A stretch of 64,000 bases of DNA from Hemiscyllium ocellatum (lineage: Eukaryota), in contig NC_083410.1 of the NCBI RefSeq assembly GCF_020745735.1, forward strand, positions 32,338,117 to 32,402,116. Reading direction: 5' to 3'. Position 1 is the first letter of the stretch; each line of letters starts with the position of its first letter. The position numbers and the translations under genes were made by a program. The notes below the pieces were generated by a model. The model was not told where the DNA came from, searched no databases, and saw nothing but the letters and a program-made list of their open reading frames with translations. Shown one piece after another: positions 1,839 through 42,943 of the stretch.

Positions 1839-3334
1839 ATTGTGGCTAACAAGAAGCAGAATGGCCTAAAACCTTGCTAATTATATTGGGACGGTGTATT
1901 TAAAATTGTTGCATTTTAAACCAATGTAGTTTCTAATACAGTGTGATCATAAATATTAAAATCAGATGGATATTTGGTTGCAGTCAAAAGCATCCTTGAT
2001 GTCCCAAATATACCTTAGCCCTAACCCCAGAACACCTCTTATTTTGTTTCAGTCCTGAGGACTGCCTTAACATGTAGGTTTGAAGATATCTATTTTAATT
2101 GCACAATAGAAATTCCATTTTTCAGGTCTTTTTGTATCCTCTATTACATTTTCTTTTGTTTGGAAATGTACAGCAAGGCTGAGTGATAACAGTAGCAAAT
2201 ATCTGTGAAGCTAAAGGCAATGATAATGCACTTAATCTGGAGAATCCGCGACTATGTTGCCTCCATAAAACAACTTCCTTATTTTCAGTGGAAACGTAGC
2301 AAAGACCTAATGGAACTGGTAACAAAAAAAATTCTGAATAATGCACTTTCCTTGTATTAAATATATTACTATGTTGAAATGAACATGAATTCTCATTGTA
2401 AATGTCTTATGTTTAACCATTAGCCGCATACCTCTCACACGTGTATCCACATTGGCCTAGATTTTCAGCACATCAAGAGGATGGTGAAATGTGTTCTTCT
2501 GAGAAGATTCACTCTGAACCTGGCTGATTTCCAGTCTTGGAGCCATGTGCACAATCTTAGTAGAAACATCGATTCCATCAAGGGATTGGCTGAGATTAAT
2601 GACAGCATTTATTGCTCACTACAACATTGCTGCTATATATTTTAAATTCTTAAAATATTTGCTGCTATAATTCCTTGAATGATTGGTCACAGTAACTCCC
2701 ATAGATGTTTAGACTATTAAGAATTTAAATAATCTATACAGACAGTCACTGTTAAAGCCATATATGGAATCATATTTGTTGGTAAAAGCATTTGTAAGCC
2801 CAGAATTTCATATATCAGGGACTCTCTTACAGTCTATACTGTCTATACCAAGAAATGCCATACTGTATCCAATGTTTTTGTAGGTTAAATGGTAGAAGAT
2901 ACATCAGGTAATGTATTTTAATTGTTTCAACATCATAGTAATATAATCACCTTGTTACAATCAGACAAGAAGAGATAATTTAGCTTCCTTTTCCTTAACC
3001 CTTCTCAGCCAATGGTATTGTCTTTGATATACGGCTATTACACATTAATTAAGATGTCACGGTGATCAAAATTAAAGTTTTCTCAAATAAAAGAAGGAAG
3101 AATTGTATTACTTACTAACCCTGAGAAAAGTAATAAAATACAACATCAAAAACGTAAGGGAAAAATTTCAGCAGATCGAGCAGCTAAACACTGAGCATCT
3201 GAAATAACACCACAGAGGCCAGTTACCTGTCATCAAGTCATCCTTTATTTATACGTGGAGAGTCCTTGTCACTGATCCAGCCCCCTCAGAGCCAGCTGTC
3301 AGAAGTGTGCTGGATACTCGACACTCCTGTTCTT

Positions 3335-4078
3335 TTTTTTTCTTTTGTTTTCGGAAGAAGGAGCTCACTGGCAATGAAGGGCAGGACGTTGGAGATCACG
3401 ACTCTCTGGGCCGTGACCTCCAAAGGGTCGACTGGCAAATGCGTCCCGCCCACAGTGAGCCCCCTCTCCACGGCCAGGTGGACCGCCTGCTCGGTCTTAA
3501 GAAAGAATACGGCCTTCCCGTACATGCGGGCCACAGCGACGATGGCCAGTGGGCCAACCACACTAGCCATGGCCTTACTGCAGGCCTTGATGGTCATGTT
3601 GGGATGGGGATAGGCCTTTACCCCCAGGCGTTTAGTCAGGTGCCTGAAGGGGGATGTGGCTGCTTCCGGGGTTGGGACGGCCAAGCCGAAGGCAGCGGCT
3701 ACCCCGGCGTAGGTCCGGCTGGGCCCTGCGACCTTTGGGCTCGCCATACTCTGCTGCTGGAGGTGGGCCTTTGGTGGTAGTAGTGGCGGAAGTCCTGGGG
3801 TTGTGCCCAAGGCCAGTCACCCGAGGAGTGTCCCAGGCAGCGACGGTGGAAACCGGCCTCAGGCAACGGCAGTGGCAGAGGCAGAGGCAGGCTTCGGGTG
3901 AGTCCCAGGTAGGCCCTTGGTCACCAGTAGGGGCAGGCCTGTTGGGAGGGTCCCCAAGGCAAGTTCCAGGCAGCCCCAAAACTGAGTCCCGGGCAGCAGC
4001 GGTGGAGGTGGGCCGCAGGTTGCAGCAGTTGTGGAGGTTGTGGGGAGTGGCCTCAGGCGAATCCCAGGCAGCGGTGGT
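3335..4078 (-). mobile_element. Tx1-clade (L1 group) non-LTR retrotransposon fragment: GC-rich repetitive 5'UTR + first ~132 codons of ORF1 + polyA
   Basis: ATG at 3747 (MASPKVAG...LTKRLGVK...ARMYGKAVFFLKTEQAVHLAVERGLTVGG...LEVTAQRVVISNVLPFI) resembles the Tx1 ORF1 RRM-type region; degenerate polyA at 3335-3351; flanked by GACACTCCTGTTCTT at 3320-3334 and 4079-4093. Confidence 0.85.
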
Positions 4079-4093
4079 GACACTCCTGTTCTT

Positions 4094-4582
4094 TTCTTTT
4101 TGTTGTTAAAGACAATTTTATTTCTAATTTTACTGAAATATCTAAATAGCATCACTTGAAATCCATTCCAGAACCTTATTACACATCATCTGCTGCAGCA
4201 GGTGCATCACCACCCTTGGTATTTCGTGTATATGTGTGCTCTATGTTTGCACACCAACTTGATCATGCCTTTTGAAAGCAGCTCCTGGAGGGCAGCTCTA
4301 GCCAGTGAACCTCTGATTTTTAACCTTTCAGAGACAACAGCAGGCGTGATGAGTTTGTAGTTGGGTATCTCTTTCAACAGCTTATCGTATGTGGCTTTGT
4401 CAAACAGGATCAAGTTGTTCAGCTTGTCTCTTACTTTTCCTTTTGACCACTTCTTTTTCTTGACCTTGCCCCCAGTCTTGTTTACTGGATCTTTATCCTT
4501 TTTGCCTCCTTTGCCTCCATCTTTCTTCTTCTTATCATCTTTTGGAGGCATGTTGCTGCTTCAAGATGTCGGAGCCGAAAAG
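4094..4582 (-). pseudogene. RPS25: Full-length processed pseudogene of 40S ribosomal protein S25 (eS25)
   Basis: Intronless ORF from 4551, [11 protein letters not shown]...[17 protein letters not shown]...[24 protein letters not shown]; small deletions near the C-terminus shift the frame (the native [14 protein letters not shown]-stop lies in another frame, stop at 4179-4181); 5' end CTTTTC (TOP-like) at 4582; AATAAA at 4117-4122; degenerate polyA ~4094-4107; 15-bp TSD at 4079-4093 and 4584-4598. Confidence 0.97.
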
Positions 4583-5148
4583 CGACACTCCTGTTCTTAG
4601 CTGTTAGCCAGGCCTCCCTGATTGGACCAGATTAATAGCCCCAAACAAGGAACTCATATTCCATGAGTTCCACCTGGCTGACCTCATTAGAATCACTAAA
4701 CATCCATGAAGTGTTCTGAGTGTTCAGCAGAGCAGAACCGTGTTCCAACACAGCCTGCAAACCCATGGCCAAATCCTCCACTCTCCCAGTACTAGCAAGC
4801 CAGAGGATCAGCACTGGTTCAAAAGACAGTGGAGAATGGCATGCCAGGAACAGCACCAAATATATTTAAAATAAGTTGAGAGATGATCTCACTCTCTTCG
4901 GAGATGTTATACATTGATACATAGACTGAGGAGTAATTTCCTATCATAGTTACTTCAATAGGTTTTAAGCAGAATGTATGCTTCCAAATCAGACAAATAT
5001 CTTTCCCTGTGGTCTCCCTGTTTTTCACTTTCCTTTTTCCTTACATCAAGCTGTTGGATCTCTCCCTCTCATGTCTCTCATTCCGCATTGAAACTCTGAG
5101 GACTTTGGCTCATCCTTAGTTGATGGTGATATGTTCAATTACAGCAAC

Positions 5149-5709
5149 TATTTGTATCATCGATAGTCACAGGTAAGGTGATGGAAGACTGGAGGTTGGC
5201 TAATGTGATGCCACTGTTTAAGAAAAGTGGTAAGGACAAGACAGGGGACTATAGACCAGTGACCCTGACATCGGTGGTGGGCATGTTGTTGGAGGGAATC
5301 CTGAGGGACAGGGTGTATATGTATTTAGAAAGGCAAGGACTGATTAGGGATAGTCAACATGGCTTTGTGCAGGGGAAATCATGTCTCACAAACTTGATTG
5401 AGTTTTTTGAGGAAGTAACAAAGAGGATTGATGAGGGCAGAGCAGTAGATGTGATCTATATGGACTTCAGTAAGGCATTCAACAAGGTTCCCCATGGGAG
5501 ACTGATTAGCAAGTTAAGATCTCACGGAATACAGGGAGAACTCGCCATTTGGATACAGAACTGGCTCAAAGGTAGAAGACAGAGAGTGGTGGTGGAGGGT
5601 TGTTTTTCAGACTGGATGTCTGTGACCAGTGGAGTGCCACAAGGATTGGTGCTGGGTCCACTTCTTTTCGTCATTTATATAAATGATTTGGATGTGAGCA
5701 TAAGAGATA
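5149..5709 (+). mobile_element. CR1 LINE internal RT fragment
   Basis: ORF 5178-5774: [54 protein letters not shown]. Confidence 0.95.
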
Positions 5710-5752
5710 TACAGAGGAATCTTGATTATCTGAATACCAATTATCTGAAAAT

Positions 5753-6550
5753 TGGTCATGTCTTTTTGTGGTGAGTTGGTGTTCATGTATCCTGGTAGCT
5801 AGTTTTCTGCCTGTTTGTCCAATGTAGTGTTTGTTGCAGTCCTTGCACGGTATTTTATAAATGACATTTTTGCTTGTTGTCTGTATAGGGTCTTTCAAGT
5901 TCATTAGCTGCTGTTTAAGTGTGTTGGTGAGTTTTCAGCTACCATAATGCCGAGGGGTCTGAGTAGTCTGGCAGTCATTTCTGAGATGTCTTTGATGTAG
6001 GGGAGAGTGGCTAGGGTTTCTGGATGTGTTTTGTCTGCTTGTTTGGGTTTATTGCTGAGAAATCAGCGGACTGTGTTCAATGGATACCCATTCTTTTTGA
6101 ATACACGGTATAGGTATAGCCACAAGAAGACATGGCCCTCTCTCACTAGTATCCTCACATACAGATGAGGAAGGACACCACTTCGACTGGGACAACACAT
6201 CCATCCTAGGACAAGCCAAACAAAGACATGCATGAGAATTCCTAGAAGCATGGCATTCCAACTCGATCAACAAACACATCGAGTCAGATCCTATCTACCA
6301 CCCCCGAGAAAAGGAACAGGAAGTGACTTCACCACAGGAAATAACATCACCACAGGAAATGACATCACCAGCCCAAAAAACCCAAACATATAAATAGAAA
6401 GCAGGAATTTTCAGCAGTGCTTCGCCTGAGGCCCACTGAAGATGTTACCTAGTAGGGTGATGAAATGTCTGGAAATGAACCTTAAAGCTCACCGAGCAAA
6501 CCTACATTCAAAACCTCAACCTGAGCTACACATTTTCTCAAAACCCGCTA
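5753..6550. mobile_element. Penelope-like element 3' part with internal inversion (5753-6108 minus; ~6116-6550 plus)
   Basis: Minus strand: NVIYKIPCKDCNKHYIGQTGRKLATRIHEH (GIY-YIG endonuclease). The plus strand continues the same domain, ATRRHGPLSLVSSHTDEEGHHFDWDNTSILGQAKQRHA*EFLEAWHS, followed by an 18-bp triple repeat, TATAAA and a hammerhead motif. Confidence 0.9.
6433..6472 (+). ncRNA. Minimal type I hammerhead ribozyme motif in the Penelope terminal repeat
   Basis: CCA-CTGAAGA(6436-6442)-stem II TGTTACCTAGTAGGGTGAT-GAAA(6462-6465)-TGTC-TGG; the flanking CCA/TGG can form stem I. Confidence 0.7.
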
Positions 6551-7927
6551 CTTAAAATATGTTTACTCACTCTTTAGGCCACAATAACTATTTTGCCAAG
6601 TAGTTGTACATGTCTGAGACCTGTTCTTTAGTGCATTTTAATCAAGCATTCTTTCATGTCAATTGCTTCAGGAGTAGCAATCACTTTTGCATGCTTTCAC
6701 CGGTATTCCAGGATCATGCCGTGCATTCTTCACTTGCAGATGATCTTTCAAAAGATCAAAAGTAAGAGTCAAGACATGTGTATCCTTCCCTCTTGGTCCT
6801 AAGGTTCCAGCTGATGGCCAAATCGTCCAATTCAGTTCCTTTAAAAAAAACTCTCATAAGTAAGGACACAAATATCTCAAGTGAAAATTGTCAACAATTA
6901 ATCTCATTTACAGTTCCCTTTCACTTGATAAGATTCCATTTAATTATGCCTAAGATGCGTTATCCCCATTGCCAGTGTCGCTGGGATGACAGGTTTTTAT
7001 TGTGGTCAAATAATTTCTTCTTAAACAATTCTTCCCATTTTATTAAATATATATGAAAACCCCTAGGCTTTTGTTTAAATTAAAATGTCAAAAAATTAAA
7101 TTTATGTTTCCCCTTAGACATCAATTAAATTTCCCATTCCGTGCTTGAACTAGCAACCTGTATCAAGATATTTTATCAATCCCAATGATGGAAACAATTA
7201 TGGTCGTTTTAAATGGTGTGTTTATATTGCAGGCACAAATAATCAAAGCCAATTTAATGTCCGCCCGTTCTCAAATAATGTCTGAGTAAAATTCCTGTGT
7301 TCCTGGCTTAGTTCTTGAAACCTGTTTGAAAACACAAAAATAAAATCCACTTTGGCTCAAGAAGAAGCTTAATGGGTTAAAAATGCCCAAGCGTGTATGA
7401 ATTTAGAAATGTTCACTATTTAGTCCTGTCCAAATCACACACCTAAAAACCTGGAATGCAGAGGATACATTTTTTTAAAAGCTGTTAGCAGGAAGTTAAT
7501 TCTCTGCTAGTCTGAGAAGGACAGGATCCATACAACCAGGTGACGTCATGTTGTAATTTTACATGTTTTGTTTTAAGAAACTGTCTAAATCGTCTGATAA
7601 TTTCACTTAACAAAAATATTTTGCCTTAAAGAAAACCTTTTTTAAGCGCTTTCTGAAGACTACCCTCAAAAACCAACACAATTATACAGACAAAATTTTA
7701 TCCATTCCAAATTTTGAGTTCAATTTGGATATTTTCCAAAATGCAGCCTATCTATATGCTTTGAGAAGCAGCTTCCCACAGCACAGGTTTTTTTAAAAAA
7801 ATCATAATTGAAAACTGAAGTTTGTGCCACTTACTTGTTGCTAGTGATTCTACCTATGTTCAACTCAATGACAAGATGCCCCTGTACTGAACCCTGTCAA
7901 GACTTGTGGTGAGCCTTTAATGGAGTA

Positions 7928-8229: not shown

Positions 8230-9245
8230 ATTGGCAGGGATCCTAGATAATGGTTATGAGGAGCATTAATTACTAAACTACTGGTCTCTTACAGCCATTG
8301 TATTAGGCAGAAGATGCCACTCTTCCGTCCACTCCCATTGCCAACAGCCCCACACGACCACCACAACTTCCATGACATTTATGCAGTTGCGGTCAGTTCA
8401 CTCATCCAGACTGCCTGCCAGGACCTCATATCTATTGGACAATGGCACTGAGTGCGGTTCGTACAAAGATAAATTCTATATTCCAACACCTGCCTCACAC
8501 ACAGTCACAACTTCCTGTTTTTGACCATGGACCAAAGTTAATGTTAATATAAATGGTGTGACCATCTCCTGAAAAGCTGTACCCAGGTAACGCTCCCCCT
8601 TCTTGACGTATTGCAGCAACCCAGCTCAGACTCTTGCTTATAAACTCTGAGCCAAATTTCTTCAATGAACCAATGTTGCAAATATGGATACTGTGGGTCG
8701 TGCCAGGGTCCACTAGTTTTCACATACTACAGATGCAGCACATCTCCTGGACAGCTACCTCTGTTATATTTACTTAATTAATTTGTATGTTAAATATTTT
8801 AAAAATGAATTTTCTAACTTTACTTTTCAACTGTATTAATCTTCCACCAATTTAAACTACTTGGCCAATTTTAACAGACACAGATGAAATTCTGACTGAT
8901 CATCTACCTGTTTTCCTGTCATGTTACAATTCAGCTCTGACAGGTAGAAACAGTTTGAACAGCTTCTCCACTGCCAGTTTTTATCTCCTGTCACTGCCAT
9001 CCTTCTCTCAGACGTTCACTCTCATGGTCTATTTTAGAGTCATGCTGACTTGTTGCACACTCCTCCCTGTCAAGATGTGGCGTTACCCCACCATGTGGCA
9101 TATATGGTATGCCTGGAAAAGTGTGACTATACAATTATGAAATCCTGACCAACAAAAATATTTTAATCTTATAGCTTGTGATTTCCTAGTAGCTAAGTGG
9201 CCTGCTATCATGAACCACTCAAAAGTGTATTACAAAACATCACTT

Positions 9246-10036
9246 AGTCACAGAGTCGTAGAGATGTACAGCACGGAAACAGACCCTTTGGTCCAACTAG
9301 TCCGTGCTGACCAAATATCCCAACCCAATCTAGTCCTATCTGCTAGCACCTGGCCCATATCCCTCCAAACCCTTCCTATTCATATACCCATCCAGATGCC
9401 TTTTAAATGTTGCAATTGTACTAGCCTCCACCAGTTCCTCTGGCAGCTCATTCCGTAAACATACTACCCTCTGCTTGAAAAAGTTGCCCCTTAGGTCTCT
9501 TTTATATCTTTGCCCATTTATTCTTAAACCTATGCCCTCTAGTTCTGGATCCCCACCCCAGGGAAAAAACTTTGTCTATTTATCCTATCCATGATTTTAT
9601 AAACCTCTATAAGATCACCCCTCAGCCTCTGATGGTCCAGGGAAAACAGTCCCAGTCTATTCAACCTCTCTCTATAGCTCAAATCCACCTGGCAACGTCC
9701 TTGTATAGCTTTACTGAACCCTTTCAAGTTTCACAACATCTTTCTGATAAGAAGAAGACCAGAATTACACGCAATATTCCAAAAGTGGCCTAACCAATGT
9801 CCTATACAGCCGCAACATGACCTCCCAACTCCTGTACTCAATACTCTGACCAATAAAGGAAAGCATACCAAAAGTCTTCTTCACTATCCTATCTACCTGC
9901 AACTCCACTTTCAAGGAGCTATGAACCTGTACTCCAAGGTCTCTTTGTTCAGCAACACTCCCTCTGACCTTACCATAAAGTGTATAAGTCCTGCTAAGAT
10001 TTGCTTTCCCAAAATACAGCACCTCGCATTTATCTG
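9246..10036 (-). mobile_element. CR1 LINE 3' fragment
   Basis: DKCEVLYFGK, LYRTLVRPLLEYCV, RLRGDLIEVYK; CTCTAYGA-type tail at the left end. Confidence 0.95.
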
Positions 10037-10399
10037 CCACTCCCCGACTTGATGGGTCATTGTTCATTCATCTTCAGCTGGAATTTGAGAGAGTTCCATT
10101 TCCTTTGAGATTGACTAGATAGGATCTCCGGTGGTGTGATTCCATTTGTGTATATTTGTAGAAGAATTTTATTGCAGTTTTGAATCATCACTCCCTTCTT
10201 AGTGCATTCTAAGGAAAAATGTTGATTTTGTAATATCACTACAGTTTTAACACCTATATCATTTCTGAGTCCTCTTGTTCTGAAGATTCCCTTAACATTC
10301 TTATTACTGCAATAGGTCTCCCATTTAAGTTCCACTAATAGGCTTTTAGATGTCCAGCCTTATTGCAATAGAAACATGTAAAGACCTTCCAGTCACTTT

Positions 10400-11300
10400 T
10401 TGGTTCTACCTTTTCTGCTCTATTACTTTGGTGTTCTTTTTTCTGTTCTATAAAATGCTTCTTTGGTCTAGGATATTTCATGACCAAGTAACTGACTCTA
10501 CTTTCCTGATTTCTTTGGAATTCAAGTTTATAAACAAATTCTATCTACTTCATTTTCTCTCTTTCATTTAATTAGTATCTTTTCATTTCTCTTTCTCTCT
10601 CTAAGTCCAGTTTCTTAACTTCTGACTGTATTGTAGGTAGTTTCAGGTGTGAATCCCAATTTCAGGTTTCCTTCCTTCTAATTCTAAATGTTGGATAATC
10701 TTTTGAACTATCCTTATGAAATTCTGATTATTTTATCTTCAATTTATCTGCTGACTGACTCAAATTAGCTTTCAAATAATGCACTGTCGTGTCTTCCATT
10801 TCCTGAAAATCCTGAGCAACATTCAAAACCATCTTCAAATTCCATGCAACACACTTTACCACAATACGGCTTTTTAGTTTCCAGAATCACATGACCTATT
10901 ATTCTAAAAAGAAAGGTACATATCCTTCCGAAACCCAATGAATTCACCACTAACCCTAATTACCCCATTTGGCATGATCCCAGCTGATGTTATTACTGGA
11001 TAAGTCAGATTCCAGATTGAAATCGGACTTGAAATATCATATTTTGGTTATTTTATTAGTTTTATTAACATTTTCTTTCACTGAAACACAAACATGCAAT
11101 ACCTCAGATTTGGTTTAATCAACAAAGCATGTGTTTATTACAGAAAACAAATGAAGATAAACTAGAATAAACTATTTTTATATCTAACACGGGTATAAAA
11201 GTTTTGAAACATATGAAATACAATCCTATTAATCCCTGGAACACCCCTTTACAGTATTCACACCAGACAAAATTCCCTTCTCCATCACATCTGTAGAATT
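10400..11300 (-). mobile_element. Possible highly decayed LTR retrotransposon 5' region (LTR + gag-like coiled coil)
   Basis: Minus-strand E/K/R-rich segment LKLPTIQSEVKKLDLERERE near 10570-10650; otherwise heavily degraded. Confidence 0.3.
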
Positions 11301-11334
11301 TACCTGACCATATGCTTTCATTTGCACTTTCTTA

Positions 11335-12135
11335 TTGGCAGCCAACATAGTAACAGTATTTCACTGTGCAACCATACTGATTGATTCTGGCTACTCTAAA
11401 AGGAATGGTAGCTCTTATAATGTGTTGTCATCCCCAAATCTGAAAATGGTGGAATTCTCAAATTATTCAATTTTGTTCTTATGTTCATTATTAAGTGGCA
11501 TTTTAACCACTCTTTCCACATATTTCAGATGTGCATCCACTGTCTAATACTGCACAATTGAAAGATTCTGCCACCAACATATTCATCATTGGGCTGAAAT
11601 TATTAACAATATATTGCCCTATTTTTGATCCATTCTCCATTTTCTTCCTCTGAATCTTCTGTTTCGTGTTTGGTTTTGCATGCTCTTTATTAAACCATTT
11701 GGACAGACAGTACTCTGAATCACCCCTGAAATATCAATTGACTATACCCTGATCATTTCTGAGGTTCATTCATTTGTTGTAAGTTCCAGTTCTGTTCACC
11801 TCTCACAGTATTTATGTCCTCATTTCTTTCAACAGCCCATCAATATTGTGTCCTTTACTTTCAGATGTAAGACTATTGTGGCATAAAAAATGCTAGAAGG
11901 GAATGCTTTCCAAAGAATATTTTCAGTAATTCTGACACTTGTTCTATCAGCTTGCTTATCTGAAACTGCCATTGAAACTAGAAATTGGTCTAAACTTGAT
12001 ACTTTGGCACAACCTAATTAACTGAAATGGTAACATAGTTTGGGAATTTATAAATAGATTTTCCACATAATTTGTTGAATTCTATTGTGTACTCTTCTGT
12101 GAGACTACCTTCACTCTTTCTGAATTTGCTATTGA
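11335..12135 (-). mobile_element. Decayed Ty1/copia (GalEa-like) gag-protease fossil
   Basis: Minus-strand KFRKSEGSLTEEYTIEFNKL (gag), a degenerate zinc knuckle near 11700-11760, VAESFNCAVLDSGCTSEICG (protease active site, AVLDSGCTS at 11527-11553) and FRFGD (11430-11444). Confidence 0.65.
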
Positions 12136-12473
12136 CAAGATTAGCATTTTTGGCCATCCCTAATTGTCCAGGACCTTTCAGAGGGCAGTTAAGGGCCAAC
12201 CACATTACTGTGGGCCTGGAATCACATCTCGGTCAGACCAGGTAATGATGTCAGATTTCTCTCCCTGAAGGACATTGGTGAACCAGGTAGACTTTTGCAA
12301 CAATACATAGTAGTTTCATGGTTACCATTGTAGCAATTAGCTTCATTTATCACAGTTATCAATTGAATTTAAATTCCATGGACTTCCATTGGTGGATTTG
12401 AATCAACATGCCCAGAAAAATATGGGCTGCTAGATTGCTATTTCAGTAACATTACTGCTATGCCACCACCTTC
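12135..12473 (-). mobile_element. Second tRNA-derived SINE family, old copy
   Basis: Shares GGGCAGTTAAG..CAACCACATT..CTGGAGTCACAT..CCCTAAAGGACATT blocks with copies at 14795, 16225, 19835 and 29560; B-box-like GGATTTGAA near the right end. Confidence 0.75.
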
Positions 12474-12972
12474 CTAGTAACTAGGAAAAGGACTGATCTT
12501 AAATCATACCTGTAGGTAATACTGAAATCCAGCAACTCTGTCACATTGTCAATCCTTGGTATTAGATTATACATAAAGGAGGGATAGGCTTTTCCAATAG
12601 AAGAGTCAATGTCATCCTGCTGCTGTTAATTTACCAATGAAGGTGTTACCTTGAGCATGACAGCTCTGACTACTGTGTGAGAATAAAGTAAGTATTGTGG
12701 GATGCCTCAGGGTCACAGGGATGCAGTAGTATAAAATAAAAGGTTAGAAATTATTGTTGCTGATATTGGTAGGAAAATACTTAATGCATTTGTATGACAT
12801 TCCTTTGTCCACTAATTCAACAGAGGTGCTAACCAGTTCATTTTAAATGGACTAATGTGTCTGATAAAATAATAGAGAAATGTTATTTGAATGCATTAAG
12901 TATTAGTCTGCTCACATTGTCAGTCTCAGAGAATTTTGGATGTTCACCATTAAAAAAAATGGCACATACAAG

Positions 12973-12973
<1 letters not shown>

Positions 12974-13003
<30 letters not shown>
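12974..13003. repeat. (TG)15 microsatellite
   Basis: Direct reading. Confidence 0.99.
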
Positions 13004-13007
<4 letters not shown>

Positions 13008-14049
13008 TCCACTTACTCTTCCTTGTTCAGATAGGGTACAAAGTTGCTGATGCAGAATCTTATGGATGGTTTATCAAAAATCTTTGTGTACAAATGAATA
13101 TAATCACTGAACCAAGGCTGACAACAAGAGTTATACACGGGAGATTCACATGAACTAATATGTACCCTGACTTGTTTAGACATACAGATTTTTAAAATGC
13201 TAATACAGTCTTAAAAGAAATAAGTAATTTTAATACGGATTATGATTCTTTAAAATTGATTTTCAGTGATCCCTATGCACTAGTGGATTTGTCATACAGA
13301 TATATTCCAAACAATGTAAGCAAAAAGCTCTCATTATTTTACATGGAATGTTACAATGTATGGATACACAGCAAAGGCATAACTTTTTAAAATTACTTCT
13401 CACAAGTCTAAATCTAAGTGTACTGTTTATTACCCAAACCATTTGGGAAGGTACTTGTAAGTTGCTTTCTTGAAACTCTGCAAGTTATGGCAGTAGGTAC
13501 AGAGACAGTGCTGTTAGGAAGCGAGTTTCTAAGGGAAGGCAGACCAGCCCCAGACCAGATCCACCACCCATCCCATATAATCCCCCACTGCCAGCCTACT
13601 CACAGAATTGACTCCCACTGTCCAGTAGCCTGACTTCCCCCCTATGAATCAAATACCTCCCTACCTCAGCTGGCCTGATCCCCCACACTAATGACACACA
13701 ATAGCCCCATTCCAATTCACTGGCTTGATATCCTCGCACCCACACCCCCTCTCCCCCACCTCCACATCTGGATAATACCTTCAAATGACTAAACACCACA
13801 CTCCCAACCTACCCTAAGCGCTATGTCAGATATCTGATACACTGACACCTTGTTCATTTGGCACCCTGCCACCTGGCACCTACATACTTGGCACACTGAT
13901 AATATAGTGGCAATTGTCCCCATATCAATCTTAAAATTAATGAAATGTCCATTGCCAAAATGTTTGACTTGGATTACCTATTTCCCCCAGAAGACCTTTC
14001 ATCTTCTATTTTTGTATCTTTACTCAATTAATTGTTTGGTTTTTCATTG

Positions 14050-14540
14050 GAACTTTGTTGTTCGGTAACTGTCTTAACTTCTACACATTTTCTTACACCT
14101 TGACTTAGAGGTGACGCATTCTTTTTTAATAGCTGAGTGCTGCTTGTGCCAGTGAGATTTCTTTTCTCCACAGTGTTAGCACTAACTCTTAGTTTCTGCT
14201 GTCTGGTCAACTCTCATTTCTCACATGTGCCTTTCGGGTCATTGTACTTTGGGAACTGAATGGATTCTGATTATCTGTGATCAGGCTGATTTCTTATAAT
14301 TAATCTCTGATTTTTTCAAACTTCTGCTCCACTTTTGATCTGGATGGTTTTCTCTAAAGTTAAAGCTTCATTGGATTCTAATTAATCTGGCAAAGATTCA
14401 TCAGTAATTCCAACAGCAATTCTGTCTTTTACAAATGTTGGATTTAAATCCATAATCACATTTCTCCACCAATCTGTGGAGATCATTAATGAAATTACTT
14501 TCCGAATGCTCTGGATGCTGTACTCTTCTATTAAATCTTG
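14050..14540 (-). mobile_element. Decayed Gypsy gag fragment
   Basis: Minus-strand FINDLHRLVEKCDYGFKSNICKDRIAVGITDESL..LESNEALTLEKTIQI, followed by the knuckle remnant C*HCGEKKSHWHKQHSAIKKEC. Confidence 0.7.
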
Positions 14541-14794
14541 CCAATTAAAGAGTTGTTAAAAGCTTGCTCAACTTTATCAAAAGTATCAGGGTGTTATTTT
14601 ATGTTTTGTCTGTTTCAAAGGCCAATATCCATAATTAGAACGAGTCAACAAAAGACTTGCAGATATTTACAAGGGCTTTATTACAAAACTAAAATGCAGC
14701 TCAAAGATGAGTTTCCATGTTTTCCTTCCACTGTCCAGAAGCCAACTCCCCACAGGGGCAGAATTCAGCTCTTGACATTTTTTTTATTCATTAA

Positions 14795-15118
14795 TGGGAT
14801 GAGAGTGTCATTGGCTAGGCCAGCATTTATTACCCATCCGTTTTGACCAGGGGGCAGTTAAAAGTCAACAACATTGCTGTGAATCTGGAGTCACATGTAG
14901 GCTAGACCAGATAAAGATGGCAGTTTCCTTCCCTAAAGGACATTAGCGAAACAGATGGATTTTTCCAACAATCAACAATGGTCATCATTGTACTCTTAAT
15001 TCCAGATATTTATTGAATTTAAATTCCACCATCTGCTGTGGCAGGATTCAAACCTGGGTCCCTGAATGTTATCTGGATCTTTGGATTACCAGTCCAGTGA
15101 TAATACCACTAGACCATT
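14795..15118 (-). mobile_element. Second SINE family copy
   Basis: Same blocks as 12135-12473. Confidence 0.8.
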
Positions 15119-15219
15119 ATTTTATATTTAAATTTCTAATCGACCTGTTCAGACATGTTATGATACATATCTGGAGCAGATGGGGCTTGAATCCAGGCCT
15201 TCAATCCAGAAGAACCTGT

Positions 15220-16170
15220 CAGAGTTCCACTCCTTTTTTCCATATCCAGACATTCCTTTATACATAACTGAACATTATTTTTTTCCACCATCAAATCACC
15301 CATGTTTCTACTTAAGTGAAACATTTATTAGCATTCCCTAACAGAGTTAGTGGAGAATTCCAATCTTTTTTCTCTTTTTTTACAAACTGAAGTGTTTTTA
15401 CACACCAGTGAACATTTTGTTCCACCACAAAATCACCTGTGTTTCCTTTCTCCTTTATCCTCCAATGCTAAATCACTGTTATTTCCAAACTAATTATCAA
15501 AGCCTATCTGGAGTAATGCAATAACCCCAAAGATGAGGGAAAGAGGGAAGGGACTAAATCAAAATGGAGTTGAAGGGGAAAATAAGGCAATCCAACTTCT
15601 GTGGTACCCACCTCTCTCTAAAGGCATTACGACATACATTCTCCCTCACCAAGAACATCTAGGCGAAAGTTCCACTCTTCGGGTTTTGCATCCAGAAGTG
15701 TTTTGCACATAATTGAATGTTTTTTTTCCATCAACAATTCACTGGAGTTTCCCTTTACCTTCCATCTCAAACTCACCCATGTTTCCATCTAAATTACAAT
15801 TGACATGCAAAGCCCATCAGTGATAGCGCAGTGACACCAACCAAACAATAGAAAAGGTAGGGAAAGAGGGAGGGAACTCAATCAAAATGGTGTTAAAGGA
15901 GGAAAGAGAGTTCCACTCTTTTCCTTTTATCTTTTCTTATGTTCAGAAATGCTTTCACGCACAACAGAATGATTTTTATCCCATCACCAAATGTCCTGCA
16001 TTGCTTTTTGTCGTTAACCTCCACCAATAAATCACTCTCCAGTTAATCAAATTACTTGCAAAACCCAGCAAGAGCAATGCATATTTCATTCCTTCCTTTC
16101 TTTTATACTCAGATGTGCTGTTACACACAACTGAAGTCGTTTTACTCCCCGTCATCAAATCACTTGTTGT
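15220..16170. repeat. Degenerate array of ~85-bp units with variable spacers
   Basis: About five copies of TTCCACTC..CAGA..ACAYAACTGAA..TTTTTCCACCATCAAATCACC.GTGTTTC (~15225, 15357, 15670, 15911, 16090), plus two copies of AAGAGGGA.GGGA..AATCAAAATGG (~15541, 15864). Confidence 0.6.
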
Positions 16171-16224
16171 ACTTGTTCATTTATTAACCACCTAAAGCAC
16201 CGCTCTTTTGTTTGTTCATTGATA

Positions 16225-16545
16225 GCATGTGGGCATTACTGGCTAGGTCAACATTTATTGCACATCTCTATTTTTTAACAGTCAATTCTTGATTGACATA
16301 CAGATGTAGACCAGACTGGGTAAGGATGGCGGATTTTCTTCCCTAAAGGACATCAGCGAAACATTTTATTTTCCAGACAATCAACAGTGGTTACACCTGG
16401 TCACTATATCTTTAGTGCAGATTATTACTGAATTCAAATTTTACCATCTACGTGGCTGGATTTGAAACCATATCCTCAGAATGTTGACTTGAGTTTATGG
16501 TTTACTAATTCAGTGGACATTATAATTACAACGTCACATTCCTCA
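16225..16545 (-). mobile_element. Second SINE family copy, decayed
   Basis: Same blocks as 14795-15118. Confidence 0.7.
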
Positions 16546-17126
16546 GTGATTTTGCAGAGATGAATTGCTATTTGTAGCACTTCTAATGATTGCTTATGGT
16601 TTGAATAAAGATTCCTTTCTCTTTAGTGGCTTTACTGCATGAATATGGTTGTCTGTGAATTAATGAATTCTTCTTAACCATTGTTTCTGTTATGTTTCTT
16701 CTGACTCCAACTGTGACCTCAATAGTTTGCTTACAAACATCTATTTGTTTAAGATTTTCATTGCCCAACATTGCTTTAATTGCTCGAGCTTTATTACATA
16801 CCAGTTCTGTGACCCCATTTTCAAATCACTTCTGGGGTCATTGATTTCCCTTACTGTAGCAGAGCCTAGTAGTGTCTGCTCCCTATGGTCACAACACTCA
16901 CTCTGAGCTGCAAATGCCTTGCTTTCGTCTAGATTTAATAGACTGCAAATGTGCCATTTTTCAAAAAAAATTGTATTCTCCTTGTTAATCAGGAATTTTA
17001 ACCTCTGATGTCTATTAATTCTCCAATCTAGAACTGTCAAGTATTGCTTGTGCTCCAACTCCATGTAGCTTCCAGCTCACATTGTTTATTTGCCTCTCTT
17101 TCCAGGTCTGACATGATTTTCTTTGG

Positions 17127-17482
17127 ATCATAGAATCCCTGCAGTGTGGAGAGAGGCCATTTGGCCCATCAAGTCTGCACTGACCCTCCAAAGACCATCC
17201 CAACCAGAATCATGCCCCCTCCCCTATCCCCATAACCCTGCATTTATCCTGCTAATCCACTTAGCCTGCACATTCCTGGACACTACAGAGCAATTTAGCA
17301 TGGGCAATCCACCTAACTCGCATCTTTGGATTGTGGGTGGAACCAGAGCACCCAGCAGAAACCCGTGCAGAGACGGGGAGAAGATGCAAAAATCCACACT
17401 GCTAGTCACTCAAATTTGGAATTGAGCCAAGCTCCCTAGCTCTGTGCAGCAGCAGTGCTAACCACTATGCCAGTATGCTGTC
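17127..17482 (-). mobile_element. HE1-related SINE
   Basis: HE1-type core (CAATTTAGCATGG..CACCTAAC..CATCTTTGGA) with a GATTCTATGAT tail. Confidence 0.85.
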
Positions 17483-19599: not shown

Positions 19600-21200
19600 C
19601 TTGTAGTAAGCACACTCCAATTCAGGCAACAGCCTGATAGAGTTCTTTTGCAACCACTCCAAAGCTTCCACATCCTTCTGAAAGTGTGTTGACCGCAACT
19701 GTATTCATCGCTCCAAATGTGGCTGAACTAAAGTCTTACACAACTGCAACACAATTTGCCAACTTTTATGCTCATTTATCTAATCGATAAATGTAAGCCT
19801 TCCTCACCACCTATTCCACTTCCTAAAAATTGATTCACGGGATGTGGATGTCACTGGCCAGGCCAGTATTTGGTGCACATCTCTCATGCCAGTAGGCAAT
19901 TACAGTCAACTACATTCCTATGGGTCTGGAGTCACACATAGGCCAAACCAGGGAATGACAATTTCCTTACTAAACTTTCCTTCCCTAAAAGACATTGGTT
20001 AATGAAATGGATTTTTCTGCCAATTAGCAACAGCTTCATGGTCATCATTAGACCCTTAATCCCAGATTTTGTTTTATTGAATTCAAAATTTTCACTATCT
20101 GCCATGGCGAATTTGAACACTGGTCCCCAGGACATCACCTAGGTCTCTGGGCTACTAATCCAGTGATAACACCAAAAGGCCTTTGCCTCCCTTGGTGTTG
20201 CCTCTTTCAGGGAACTATTGACTTGAACCCCAAGTTCCCCTTACATCAATGCCCCTAAGGGTCCTGCCACTTACTGTATACTTCCGTTTTGCATTGGACC
20301 TGGCAAAATGCATCACCACACATTTCTCCAGATTAATTCCCAGCTGCCATTTCTCCGCCTGACTTTCCAACTAATCTATATCCTGATGTATCCTTTGACA
20401 ATGTTCCTTGCTATCTGCAGCTCCACTAATTTCTATGTCATCCGCAAACTTACCATTCACATCACCTACTTTTTATCTAAATCATTCCTATGTATTACAA
20501 ACAATAGAGATGCCAGCAATGATCATTTTAGAATATCACTGGTCACAGACTGCAGTCAGTGGAACACTCCTCCACAATTACTTTCTGTCTTCTATGGTCA
20601 AGCTAATTTTATATCCAACTTACGAATTCAGCATGGATTCCATATGGTTTAATCTTCTGGACCAGACTATCTTGAAAGACCTTGTCAAACACTTCAATAA
20701 AGTCCACATAGACAACATGCACTGCCCACCCTCATCAACCTCTTAATCACTTTCTCAAAAAGCTCAATCAAATTTGTGAGACAAGTCGTCCCCTATACAA
20801 AGCCATGATAACTCTCCCTAATAAATCCATTCTTTTCCAAATGTGAGTAAATCCTATATCTAAGAATCCTCTACAATAATTTCCCGAGCAGTGATGTAAG
20901 TCTCACTGGCCTATAATTTCCTGACTATCCCTGGTGCCCATCTTAAACACAAGGAAAACATTGGCTATTCTCCAGTCTTCTAGGACCTCACAAGTGACTA
21001 AAGAGGATACAAAGATCTCTGTCAAAGACTCAGGAAACTCTTTCCTTGCTTCCCTCAGTATCCTGGGATACACTCCATTAGTCCCTGGGGATTTACTTAC
21101 CTTAATGTTTTTCAAGACACACAACATATCCTCCTCCTTAATTACTATATTCCTTAGAATATCAACATACCCTGCTCTAATCTTACCATAATCCACATAT
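19600..21200 (-). mobile_element. Decayed CR1 LINE ORF2, interrupted by a SINE
   Basis: KSPGTNGVYPRILREAR, EDWRIANV (ORF 20903-21238); RT remnants to ~20190, resuming left of 19835. Confidence 0.85.
19835..20190 (-). mobile_element. Second SINE family copy nested in CR1
   Basis: Same blocks as 14795-15118. Confidence 0.8.
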
Positions 21201-21654
21201 ATGAGTATCTTTTTGGAAATTGAGAGGATAATGGTCATTGGAAGCTAAAATGAATGTTAAATGGGATGAATTGGCACTCAGCAGGGGAGAGAAACAAAGA
21301 TAGAACTTGAGGCATCAGGCACTGAAGAGTCAATTGGAAACAATGGTCAGCATAGTTTAAGGATAAAAGGGAGAAGAGCAGAGTTCAGGTGGTGAATAGT
21401 GATGTAAATTCTTAAGGTGAAGTGAGTACTAAAGTAACCACAGCTGTTACAGCAGAAATGACAATGAGTTAAACGATAGCATCAAGACAGAAGGATAGGG
21501 TAGGGACAGTTGCTCAACTGAGAGTTTTATACACTAACACAAGTAATATAAGAAGAGTCAAACATAACTTGTGGGGTATGACATTTTGGCTGTTACTGAG
21601 ACATGGCAGAAATCTGGTACTGAATATAACTTAGTATTCCAATATTAATATCAT

Positions 21655-23683: not shown

Positions 23684-26600
23684 TAGAACAAAGAAAGGTA
23701 CAGCACAGAACAGACCCTTCAGCCCACGACGTTTTACCGAGGATTATTCCTAATCTAAAATAAAATAACCTAATCTACGCACCCTGCACTTCACTGCTGT
23801 CCATGTGCATGTCCAGCAGTCACTTAAATGTCTCTAATGACTCTGCTTCCACCACCACTGCTGGTAATGCATTTCATGCATTCACAACTCTCTGCGTAAA
23901 GAACCTATCTCTGAAGTCTTCTCTATCCCTTCCTCCTAATATCTTTAAACAATGACCCCTCATACCAGTCAATCCTGTCCTGGGGAAAAGTCTCTGGCTA
24001 TTAACTCTATCTATGCTTCTCATTACCTTGTACACCTCAATCAGGTCACCACTCTTCTTCCTTCTCTCCAGCAAGAAAAGTCCGAGATTAGTCAACCTCT
24101 CTTCATAAGACAAGCCCTCCAGTCCAGGCAGCATCTTGGTAAACCTCTTCAAAGCCTCCACATCTTTCCTATAATAGGGCAACCGGAAGTGGATGCAATA
24201 TTCCAAGTGTGGTCTCACCAGGGGCTTGTAGAGCTGTAGCAAAACCACATGGCTCTAAAACTTGATCCCCCTGCTAATGAAAACCAAAACACCATTTGCT
24301 TTCTTAACAACCCAATCCACTTGAGTGGCAACTTCGAAGGATCTATGCACTTGAACACAAAGATCCCTTTGTTCCTCTACACTGCCAAGAATCCTGTCTT
24401 TAATTCTATAAACAGCATTCGAATTCGACCTTCCAAAATGCATCACTTTGCATTTATCCAGGTTGAACTCCATCTGCCATTTCTCAGCTCAGCTCTGCAT
24501 CCTACATCACGCTGTAGCCTACAATAGCCTTCGATACAATCAATGGCACCTCCAACCTTTGTGTCATTGGCAAATTTATTAATCCACCCCTCAACCTCCT
24601 CATCCAAGTCAATTATAAAAACTACAAAGAGCAGAGGCCCAAGAACAGAGCCCTGCAGGACACCACTCACAACTGACCTCCAGACACAATACTTTCCATT
24701 TCCAACCACTCTTTGCCTTCTGTCAGCCAACCAATTCTGAATCCAGAGAGCCAAATTTCCCTGTATCCCATACCTCCTGACTTTATGAATGAGCCTACCA
24801 CAGGGAACCTTATCAAGTGCCTTACTGAAGTCCAAATATACCACATCCACTGCTTGACCTTCAATGACCTATCTCATCCTCTCCTCAAAGAACTCAATAA
24901 GATTTGTGAGGTATGACCTGCCCCTCACAAAGTCGTGCTGACTGCCTTTAATCATGCTATGCTTTTCCAAATTGTCATAAATCCTATTCCTTAGAATTAT
25001 TTCCAAAACCACAGATGTAAGGCCGACTGGTCTGTAATTGCCAGGGATTTCCCTATTCCCATTCTTGAAAAGAGGAACAATATTCGCCTCCCTCCAATCC
25101 TCCAGTACGACTTCTGTGGAGAGTGAGGAAGCAAAGATCTTCGCCAACAGCTTAGCAACCTCCTTTCTCACTTCCAGGATCAACCAAGGATAAATCTGGT
25201 CTGGCCCTAGGAACGTATCAATCTTAATGTTTGCCAAAATTTCCAGCTCATCAACTTCATCAATCTTGATCTGTTCAAGCCTGTTTCCCAGCTCCTCAAA
25301 GTTCTCAATCACAGCAAGGTCCCTTTCCTTTGTGAAAACCGAAACAAAAAACTCATTTAGGGCTTCCCCTATCTGCTCTGACTCCACGCACAAGTTCCCT
25401 ACACTATCCCTGACCAGCCCTACCTTCTCCCTGATCATTCTCTTATTCCTCATGTCCATAATCCTTCCTGCCAAGCCTTTTTCATGCCCTTCCTGGCTCT
25501 CCTCAGTCCATTTCTGAGCTCCTTTCTAGTAAGTCTTTAATCCTGTAAAGCTGTGCTAGATCCTTGCTTCCTCCACCTTATGTAAGCTGCCTTCTTCCTT
25601 TTGATGAGAAGCTCCTCTGATCTCGTCATCCAAGGCTCCTTAACCTTTCTACTTCTTGCCTGTCTCAGAGGAACAAATTTGTGCATCACTTGCAACAACT
25701 GCTCCTTAAACAATCTCCTCATGTCAGTTCTGCCTTTCTGTGGAACAATTGCTCCCAATCTGTACTTCCTAACTCATGTCTGATAGCATCATAATTTGCT
25801 TTTCCTCAATTAAATATCTTCCTTTGGTAACTGCTCCTTTCCCTCTCCAAGGCTATGTTAAATGTGAGGCAGTTGTGGTCACTGTCACCAAAGTGTTCTC
25901 CCACTGTGAGATCTGGCACCTGTCCTGGCTCATTTCCGAGCACCAAATCCAAAATGGCCTCTCTCCTTGTCGGCCTGTATACATACTAAGTAAGGAAACC
26001 CTTCTGAACACACCTGACAAAAATGGCTCCATCCAAACCCATCTGCACTAAGGAGATTCCAGTCGATATTGGGAAAGTTGAAGTCACCCAAAACAACAAG
26101 CCTGCGACATCTGCATTTTTCCAAAATCTGCCGGCCTATGAGTTCTTCAATCTCCCTACTGCTATTGGAGGTCTGTAGAAAACCCCCAATGAGGGGGCTG
26201 CTCCCTTGCTGTTCCTAATTTCCACCCATGCTGACTCAGTAGACAAACCTTCCTCAACAACCTTTGTTTCTGTCGCTCTCTGATTAACAATGCTGCACAC
26301 CCTCCTCTTTTTCCACCCTCCTGTTCTTTTTAAACATTCTAAACCCTGGAATATCTAGCAATCATTCCTGCTCCTTTGAAACCCATGTCTCCGTTATGGC
26401 CACAACATCATAGTCCCACGATCCATGCTCTAAGTTCATCACTCTTATTTCTGACACGCCTTGCATTAAAGCAGTCACACTTTAACCGATCCCTTTGTTC
26501 CACCACATGAAAAACCTTCCTGATTGATTCACTACACCCTGTCACTTCCCCATATCTAACTATCCCCCCCTCAGCTTTGAAGCTCCCACCCCCTGCCAAA

Positions 26601-28215
26601 CTAATTCAAACCCTTCCGAACCACACAAGCAAATCTCCCACCTAGGACATTTGTGCACCTCCAATTCAGGTGCAACCCGTCCTTCATGTACAGGTCCCAC
26701 CTTTACCAGAAGGCATCCCAATGGTCTAAATATCTGAAGCCCTCCCTCCTGCACGAGCCTTGCAGCCAGGTGTTAAGCTGCATTCGCTGACTGTTCCTCA
26801 CCTCACTATCTCATGGCACCAGTAGCAGACCTGAGATCACTACCCTACTCGTGCTGCTCTTCAGCTTCCAACCTAGCCCTCTGTGGTCACTTTTCAGATC
26901 CTCAATGCCTTTCCCGGCTGTATCATTGGTGCTAATATGTACCACGATTTCTGGCTGCTCGCCCTCCTCCTTCAGAATCCTGTAAACTCGATCGGTGACA
27001 TCCTGGACCCTGGCACCGGGGAGGCAACATACCTTCTAGGAGTCCTGTTCCTGACCATAAAATCTCCTATCAATCCATCTAATTATTGAGTCCCCTACCA
27101 CTAGTGCTTTTCTATTCTCCTCCCTTCTCTTCTCAGCCTGAATAGACAATAGACAATAGGTGCAGGGATAGGCCATTCTGCCCCTCAAGCCTGCACCACC
27201 ATTCAATATGATCATGGCTGATCATCCTTAATTAGTAACCTATCCCTGCCTGATCTCCATAACCCTTGATTTCACTCTCCTTGAGAGCTCTATCCAACTC
27301 TTTCTTAAATGAAAGAGGGCCTCCACTGCCCTCTGGGCCAGAGCATTCCACACAGCCACCACTCTCTGGGTGAAGAAGTTTCTCCTCATCTCTGTCCTAA
27401 ATGGTCTACCCTGTATTTTTCCGCTGTGTCCTCTGGTTCGGCACTCACCCATCAGCGGAAACATGATTCCTGCCTCCAGAGTGTCCAATCCTCAGTGCCA
27501 GAGACCAGACAACTATGGCTTTCCCCTGATAGGCCATCCCCACCAGCAGTATCCAAAATGCTATACTTATTGCTGAGGGGAACAGTCACAGGGGATCACT
27601 GCTCTGTCCGTCGGTTCCCTTTCCTCCCTTGACTGTAAGCCAGCTGTCCTTATCCGGTATCTGAGGAGTGAACACCTCCCTGTACATCCTCTCAATTTTC
27701 CCCTCAGCCTCCCGGATGATCCTCAGTTCGTCCAGCTCCTGCTCCAGTTCCCTAACTCGGTTTTTGAGGAGCTGGAGCTGGGTGCACTTCCCCCAGATGT
27801 GGTCGGCAGAGACATATGTCATGTCTCTCACCTGCTACATTCTGCAGGAGGAACATGCAGCTTCCCTAAACAGTGGTTTTCTGCTAATCTGAAAGCCCAC
27901 ACAGGACTAAACTAGGAAGAGAAGAAAAGAAAAAAAAAAGAGAAAATCTGAAAACTTACCAAGTTTACAGACTCTTACTAAGATTAGAGGAGGTGGGTGA
28001 GAGAGATGCCCTATGGTATAGGGTCCCAGGTTTAGATCTCATCCACTTAAAAACTTCCTGGCAGCTCTCATTTCTCTCCATCCTCTCTCCTCACTGCTCT
28101 TTTCAAAATGGAGGCCCGACTCTCGAGCTAAGTCCCTCTTTAAGTTGGAAAAACTGACCTATCCGACATTCTCCTCTGCCCTCTCTCCTCACCACTCTGT
28201 TCAGAAAATGTGCAG
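23684..28215 (-). mobile_element. Near-full-length CR1 LINE (5'UTR, ORF1 zinc-finger/coiled-coil/esterase, ORF2 APE+RT), decayed
   Basis: ORF1 GKCTQLQLLKNRVRELEQELDELR; APE CFNARRVRNK and VVLGDFNFPNIDW; RT YLDFSKALDKV, QGSVLGPLLF, KFANDTK; possible 6-bp TSD GGAGTA at 23678-23683 and 28216-28221. Confidence 0.93.
27142..27492 (-). mobile_element. 3' end of a different CR1 subfamily nested in ORF1 of the host CR1
   Basis: RTRGHSGKIQGRPFRTEMRRNFFTQRVV; (CTATTGT)n tail. Confidence 0.9.
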
Positions 28216-42809: not shown

Positions 42810-42943
42810 AGATCCCAATGTGATCAGATGTGTTATTTCTGGCTTCTTAAATTTGACAAAGCACTGGGACCAGAGGAGATCCCAATGTGATCAGATGTGT
42901 TATTTCTGGCTTCTTAAATTTGACAAAGCACTGGGACCAGATG
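42810..42943. repeat. Tandem duplication, 2 x 67 bp
   Basis: 42810-42876 and 42877-42943 are identical except for one base. Confidence 0.95.

Follow-up and report, generated by a model that had tools for sequence, protein, structure and literature searches.

Two tailed retrocopies at a single 15-bp site in Hemiscyllium ocellatum and their possible origin from target-specific Tx1-type machinery

The locus described here lies in a stretch of 64,000 nucleotides from the shark Hemiscyllium ocellatum (assembly GCF_020745735.1, contig NC_083410.1, positions 32,338,117 to 32,402,116 of the forward strand), which is called the window throughout. In this window the 15-mer GACACTCCTGTTCTT is present in exactly three exact copies, and these enclose two antisense A-tailed RNA copies of the same orientation, namely a fragment of a Tx1-type retrotransposon (insert 1) and a processed RPS25 pseudogene (insert 2). 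Their coordinates are collected in Table 1. An annotation made earlier from the sequence alone (the original prediction) had listed the three copies, and all of them were confirmed as exact at those positions, together with the T-tract and the antisense RNA copy that follow the first two; the tracts are T-rich, and both tails are short and impure. If up to two mismatches are allowed, only two extra matches appear in the window (26314 and 29942), both in unrelated sequence, and the observed count was equalled in none of 100 dinucleotide-preserving shuffles. The two inserts are also the only tailed retrocopies (A or T) in the 64 kb, the other A-rich tract of the window (27925-27941) being isolated and with no flanking duplication found. 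Blastn searches with both inserts and both halves of the target against the window gave no additional copies. The outer copies of the 15-mer agree over one further base (C at 3319 and at 4583), and the base preceding the middle copy is T. This means that the predicted agreement of nick, orientation and duplication length is borne out in a 15-bp reading, while the outer duplication could be 16 bp long. The pattern of the locus is real and non-random.

Table 1. Features of the Hemiscyllium ocellatum locus and of related Tx1L-like loci (positions refer to the sequence in the first column; a slash marks the nick).
Sequence	Feature	Position	Strand	Remark
Window	Left part of pre-insertion target unit	3200-3319	.	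single copy in window
Window	Target-site duplication copy 1, GACACTCCTGTTCTT	3320-3334	+	exact match
Window	Insert 1: 5' untranslated region, ORF1 N-terminus and A-rich tail	3335-4078	-	
Window	A-rich tail of insert 1, reads AAAACAAAAGAAAAAAA on minus strand	3335-3351	-	17 nt, impure
Window	Tx1-type ORF1, N-terminal 132 codons, ends after ...ELLLP	3352-3747	-	homology
Window	GC-rich 5' untranslated region of insert 1, 331 nt, degenerate CTGCCTGGGA-type repeats	3748-4078	-	repeat families D1-D3
Window	Target-site duplication copy 2, common to both inserts	4079-4093	+	exact match
Window	Insert 2: processed RPS25 pseudogene	4094-4583	-	Pfam Ribosomal_S25, 5e-42
Window	Short impure tail of insert 2, AAAAAGAA on minus strand	4101-4094	-	
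Window	AATAAA of insert 2	4122-4117	-	16 nt ahead of tail
Window	Stop of insert 2	4181-4179	-	
Window	Frameshift of insert 2	near 4242-4221	-	
Window	ATG of insert 2	4551	-	
Window	5' terminal oligopyrimidine (TOP)-like start of insert 2, CTTTTCGG	4582	-	
Window	Target-site duplication copy 3	4584-4598	+	exact match
Window	Inferred first-strand nick, original site TTCTT/AGCT	after 4598		
Window	Right part of pre-insertion target unit	4599-4699	.	single copy in window
L005	Tx1L-like element	9435-16807		bounded by 17-bp duplication GCTGTACCCTTGAGCAA inside tRNA-type short interspersed element (SINE)
L006	Duplication between two head-to-tail copies	9009-9026		GCTGTACCCTTGAGCAA alone separates copies
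L013	3' junction of Tx1L-like element	17394-17410		same as L005, at independent SINE copy

The piece of open reading frame 1 (ORF1) in insert 1 is 64% identical to protein P0005 (E=1e-38). Its nearest proteins are P0006, P0002 and P0003 from whale shark, which are EukProt gene models, followed by a catshark protein and by host-derived contigs in metagenomes. It also shows 60% identity over 73 residues with P0016, the ORF1 of locus L005, which is located directly upstream of an intact ORF2 of 1296 amino acids with Exo_endo_phos and RVT_1 domains. This ORF2 in turn shows, across 100% of its length, 59% identity with ORF2 of Xenopus Tx1L (YTX2_XENLA, "Transposon TX1 149 kDa protein"). The linkage of ORF2 to the ORF1 of the relatives supports placing insert 1 in a real Tx1 lineage, and homology with these ORF1 sequences bears out the predicted Tx1-type piece as a fragment and not as an element. 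The ORF1 of every relative extends beyond ...ELLLP, with a remainder that includes a CCHC knuckle, and insert 1 is therefore 3'-truncated. Both ORF2 and the native 3' end of the element are absent from insert 1, which stops after 132 ORF1 codons and an A-tail, so that insert 1, too, counts as a passive cargo with an A-tail and does not reveal the enzyme. A Tx1 ORF2 was not found anywhere in the window either, where tblastn with Tx1 ORF2 proteins gave weak CR1 matches only. No AATAAA-type hexamer is present in the 45 nt ahead of the tail, which rules out premature polyadenylation at a canonical signal. An extension of the P0005 alignment by tblastn across the tail into the 15-mer was judged as chance.

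Some further properties of the inserts may be recorded. The 5' untranslated region (UTR) of insert 1 contains, at 3824-3832 and on the opposite strand, the nine bases with which the duplicated site begins (GACACTCCT), and this stretch of element RNA would complement the site on the element-sense strand (estimated chance ~0.04). The 5'UTRs of related elements are built from tandem units of ~22 bp (L004, 1-95) or ~70 bp (L007, 1-400) and recall the monomer promoters of mouse L1, the 5'UTR in the window being a degenerate version. A common motif with interruptions is present in both tails, as ACAAAAGAA in insert 1 (3335-3351) and as ACAAAAAGAA in insert 2 (4094-4107); the tail of insert 2 moreover ends in AAGAA, the same five bases with which the duplication begins. 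These likenesses of the tails could be due to slippage, shared templating or mere tail decay.

Insert 2 has the anatomy by which processed pseudogenes are recognised, i.e. a contiguous complementary DNA (cDNA) that runs from the 5' end of the mRNA to a tail after the polyadenylation signal and that is flanked by a duplication; introns in the parent gene are assumed from vertebrate RPS25. It is a pseudogene because its reading frame shifts once, the normal C-terminus of RPS25 resuming in another frame past the frameshift. The original prediction spoke of a full RPS25 mRNA. This holds for the length of the cDNA, which reaches from the TOP-like 5' end to the tail, and has to be amended for the frameshift and for base 4583, which intervenes before the third copy of the 15-mer. 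This base (C) can be either a cap-derived G or a sixteenth duplicated base.

Relatives with known target sites were found in three loci (L005, L006 and L013) of assembly GCA_050626445.1, which is labelled Acipenser sinensis and whose proteins are flagged by the source as possible contamination. In all three of them one fixed site, GCTGTACCCTTGAGCAA, within a SINE is occupied. The array in L006 has the layout site-insert-site-insert-site, as in the window, and L013 additionally contains a head-to-tail junction of copies without duplication. The elements of this assembly end in ...TTAAATAG, with a stem-loop-forming sequence ahead and no A-tail. The ...TTAAATAG end also occurs in a more distant but intact Tx1 relative, which lies on metagenome contig L012, and the sequence past this end (6420-6579, ...TTAAATAG and (CTA)n) resembles the 5' start of the contig (1-520), which looks like a further tandem array. 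The catshark relative (L011, 9061-11894) consists of a complete ORF1 between a 5'UTR and a short 3' region with the terminus ...AATAAAAAGAT(AT); it has no ORF2 and may represent a non-autonomous ORF1-only derivative. It sits in a common shark SINE and is bounded by a duplication of 13-15 bp, (AT)GGCCAATCCACCT. Scanning of metagenomes with the ORF1 alignment gave no confirmed locus, and the 19-mer ACTCGACACTCCTGTTCTT had three matches there with unrelated flanks, about as many as expected by chance. The arrangements in GCA_050626445.1 support the view that the insert 1 lineage has close relatives that insert at specific sites and build tandem arrays around the duplication.

Among the gene models of whale shark, P0008 unites a Tx1 reverse transcriptase segment, a translated 5'UTR-like stretch and the N-terminus of ORF1 in one predicted protein, an arrangement to be expected of a gene model that runs across head-to-tail Tx1 copies.

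The sequence around the inserts was predicted to be a solo long terminal repeat (LTR) with its own CATC duplication. If both inserts and two copies of the 15-mer are taken out, 3200-3334 indeed joins 4599-4699 in a unit of 236 bp. The identification as LTR, which calls for TG...CA termini plus a duplication of 4-6 bp, is not borne out: the unit opens with TG at 3200, CA ends at 4701, and with the CATC repeat the end must lie at 4699, so that termini and duplication are mutually exclusive because they require different ends. In minus orientation CCAAT and TATAAATAAA motifs are present, which are suggestive of an LTR only and no proof. The proposed check for further copies of the unit, which covered the window and the fetched loci only, revealed no second copy of either half. 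The flanks contain no recognisable interrupted repeat. In particular, the unit does not interrupt a CR1 copy, which would have proved its insertion, as the CR1 similarity begins only at 5149. The target was also considered as an RNA gene and rejected, since no Rfam family reached the gathering threshold anywhere in the window and this region gave only a chance sRNA hit.

The primer strand in the window reads ...CTCCTGTTCTT/AGCTGTTAG and that of the relatives in GCA_050626445.1 reads ...GGGTACAGC/AGCAGTGTCC, with the nick ahead of AGCA. Thus, five of seven bases after the nick are alike, with an estimated chance of ~0.013 for that single comparison. The endonuclease of Tx1L cuts ahead of AGTT, and the L1 endonuclease bearing the Tx1L hairpin loop cuts ahead of AGCT (Repanas et al. 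2007, PMC1950540), the consensus site of L1 being TTTT/AA (PMC1950540). The common /AG(C/T) can be considered as a suggestive but weak sign of Tx1-type nicking.

The simplest reading of the locus, and a very probable one, is that of two sequential events of target-primed reverse transcription at one nick in one 15-bp site. The signature of this process had been predicted and is supported by the two A-tailed inserts with the same nick, orientation and 15-bp duplication. An endonuclease of the apurinic/apyrimidinic (APE) type from the L1/Tx1 group would nick the plus strand after ...CTCCTGTTCTT, ahead of AGCT, and the T-rich 3' end would serve as primer on an RNA with an A-rich tail. Another nick at a distance of 15 bp would then create the duplication, which rebuilds the site, so that the second event could strike one of its two copies and leave the order site-insert-site-insert-site. 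The cargoes in this scheme would be passive A-tailed RNAs, i.e. a 3'-truncated Tx1 transcript and the RPS25 mRNA. With the Tx1 piece as the earlier insert, RPS25 would have gone into the right-hand copy, and base 4583 would be the cap-derived G; with RPS25 as the earlier one, its duplication would be 16 bp long and that of the Tx1 piece, inserted into the left-hand copy, 15 bp. The sequences show the anatomy of the locus, the Tx1 affiliation of insert 1 and how its relatives behave; from these we infer the mechanism, the acting enzyme, a preference for the site in this genome and which insert came first.

The enzyme is most likely that of a Tx1-clade element with target-site preference. It is favoured because full L1 elements are reported as absent from cartilaginous fishes, with Tx1 present (whale shark genome paper, PMC8455134), and because the insert 1 lineage is site-specific elsewhere. 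For a preference counts that nick, orientation and duplication length are common to the only two tailed retrocopies of the 64 kb. In addition, whichever insert came first, the second event had one of its nicks beside new sequence and the position was kept. One sign of target-specific insertion, the same nick and duplication length together with tandem copies around the duplication, is found here for two events at one locus. Taken as a whole, the statement that Tx1-type machinery with a site preference made both insertions appears somewhat more probable than its negation.

Several points weigh against it. The preference in this genome is deduced from one locus, and both cargoes are generic A-tailed RNAs that are uninformative on the enzyme. 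Insert 1 says nothing of the enzyme, which weakens the step from the presence of a Tx1 piece to the choice of the site by Tx1. The ...TTAAATAG ends without polyA suggest that template recognition in those families is stringent and not polyA-based. An A at position +1 fits L1-type enzymes equally well, TTCTT/AG departs from the L1 consensus TTTT/AA to a degree that can be tolerated, and the catshark relative has another nick context. Finally, a 16-bp duplication of RPS25, if real, would put the second-strand nicks one base apart.

These points lead to the strongest rival explanation, a chance or hot-spot re-strike by non-specific polyA-dependent L1-like machinery on the T-rich site TTCTT/AG without any Tx1 specificity, the first insertion having left the nick site intact and an unrelated retrocopy having reused it with the same spacing of the second nick. 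We regard it as rather unlikely and yet as the explanation to be taken most seriously besides Tx1-type site preference. Neither of the generic A-tailed cargoes carries a Tx1 3' end, TCTT/AG is only two changes away from the L1 consensus (PMC1950540), and with the Tx1 piece first the right-hand copy retains the entire original nick context. Cartilaginous fishes are moreover reported to have retrocopies in fair numbers (bioRxiv 10.64898/2026.06.26.734816), so that by our own estimate some coincidences per genome have to be expected. On the other hand, the L1 machinery required by this explanation is the one that was not reported in full from cartilaginous fishes. The sole two such insertions in 64 kb agree to the base, which is very improbable per window under uniform insertion, and the nick beside new sequence that stayed put in either order speaks against mere coincidence, too.

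Far less probable is the single insertion of a composite read-through RNA (RPS25 copy, 15-mer and Tx1 piece) derived from another copy of the site. The element-sense order of RPS25, tail, 15-mer, Tx1 5'UTR-ORF1 and tail could in principle be one transcript, but its donor locus must already have been struck at the same site, and site specificity would thus be presupposed. Furthermore, transcription must begin exactly at the 5' end of the RPS25 mRNA although retrocopies bring no promoter, and the new duplication must equal the internal 15-mer. Equally remote is an artefact or later rearrangement, either by collapse of the assembly or by unequal exchange between alleles with different inserts at the site: an exchange inside the 15-bp duplication would yield the same end structure, but it still needs two independent strikes on the same site, and the window contains neither N nor assembler-confusing repeats here. 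Template switching in one event is ruled out, as the complete 15-mer that separates the cDNAs would not result from it.

The remaining repeats of the window comprise many CR1-like LINE (long interspersed element) fragments with reverse transcriptase motifs (20-1869, 5149-5774, 20475-21238, 23874-25474 and 53659-56381). This richness in CR1 and the whale shark affinities of insert 1 are in keeping with an orectolobiform shark as host. Two segments, 5149-5709 and 381-929, belong to the same CR1-like family because they are 83% identical. In addition there is a 67-bp unit with 2.1 repeats at 98% identity (42810-42947) and a (TG)15 microsatellite (12974-13003).

A much wider claim is that a shark Tx1 family combines a site-specific endonuclease with tail-based choice of the template and in this way writes arbitrary polyadenylated host RNAs and pieces of its own RNA into one sequence, building arrays. 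We consider this possible but doubtful. If true, nature would provide here an APE-type "writer" that puts unrelated mRNAs into a specific site. Genome-wide confirmation would extend target-specific Tx1 with trans-mobilised cargo from crocodilian SINEs to shark host mRNAs, and would suggest that Tx1 makes the processed pseudogenes of a vertebrate lineage without L1. Retrocopies were counted in cartilaginous fishes in a 2026 preprint, which ascribed the non-mammalian ones to CR1 or Tx1 by correlation only (bioRxiv 10.64898/2026.06.26.734816). A confirmation would bear on the origin of retrocopies outside mammals as well as on the search for natural site-specific reverse transcriptase systems that accept foreign polyA RNA.

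Compared with known systems, insert 2 resembles the processed pseudogenes made by mammalian L1 in several respects: its cDNA is of the spliced type and complete in length, AATAAA is followed by a tail, the duplication measures 15 bp, and an additional G from the cap may be present. It differs in its site, which is TCTT/AG instead of TTTT/AA and was used twice, and in a host lineage reported to be without full L1. With the elements of GCA_050626445.1 the locus shares a homologous ORF1, a fixed duplication, the head-to-tail arrangement (in L006) and a similar nick (/AGCA). In contrast, those elements are full-length with an ORF2 that contains both APE and reverse transcriptase, have the ...TTAAATAG end and no A-tail, use a tRNA-type SINE as target, and show no foreign cargo at the three loci L005, L006 and L013. 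Tx1L of Xenopus laevis, the archetype of the site-specific Tx1 elements, which inserts into Tx1D, is related through the ORF2 of the insert 1 relatives (59% identity) and nicks at /AGTT compared with /AGCT in the window, whereas the window is without ORF2. The duplication of Tx1L is 23 bp long, and to our knowledge no mRNA cargo of it has been described.

The nearest parallel is found in crocodilians, where a Mariner family, LTR retrotransposons (hit by Tx1-8_Crp and Tx1-4_AMi) or Harbinger elements serve as targets of Tx1 families (Kojima 2015, PMC4494074). All SINEU groups have polyA tails, and for SINEU-3 a 16-bp duplication in Mariner-N4_AMi was inferred (Kojima 2015, PMC4494074). Tandem polyA-tailed SINEU copies at the target of Tx1-Mar, which mobilises them, arranged around the 16-bp duplication, were described as sequential insertions (Kojima 2015, PMC4494074). 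The predicted unusualness of the shark locus was overstated given this direct precedent, which lowers its novelty; the proposed mechanism is plausible. Both systems would have in common a target-specific Tx1 machinery, non-autonomous polyA RNAs at the site of the LINE, a regenerated duplication and the tandem layout. They differ since in the shark an mRNA of the host and a truncated transcript of Tx1 take the place of a SINE family as cargo, and since hundreds of copies in crocodilians stand against one locus in the shark, whose target is a repeat only putatively. From this comparison the locus is best regarded as a neat example of the described type and not as a new kind of system.

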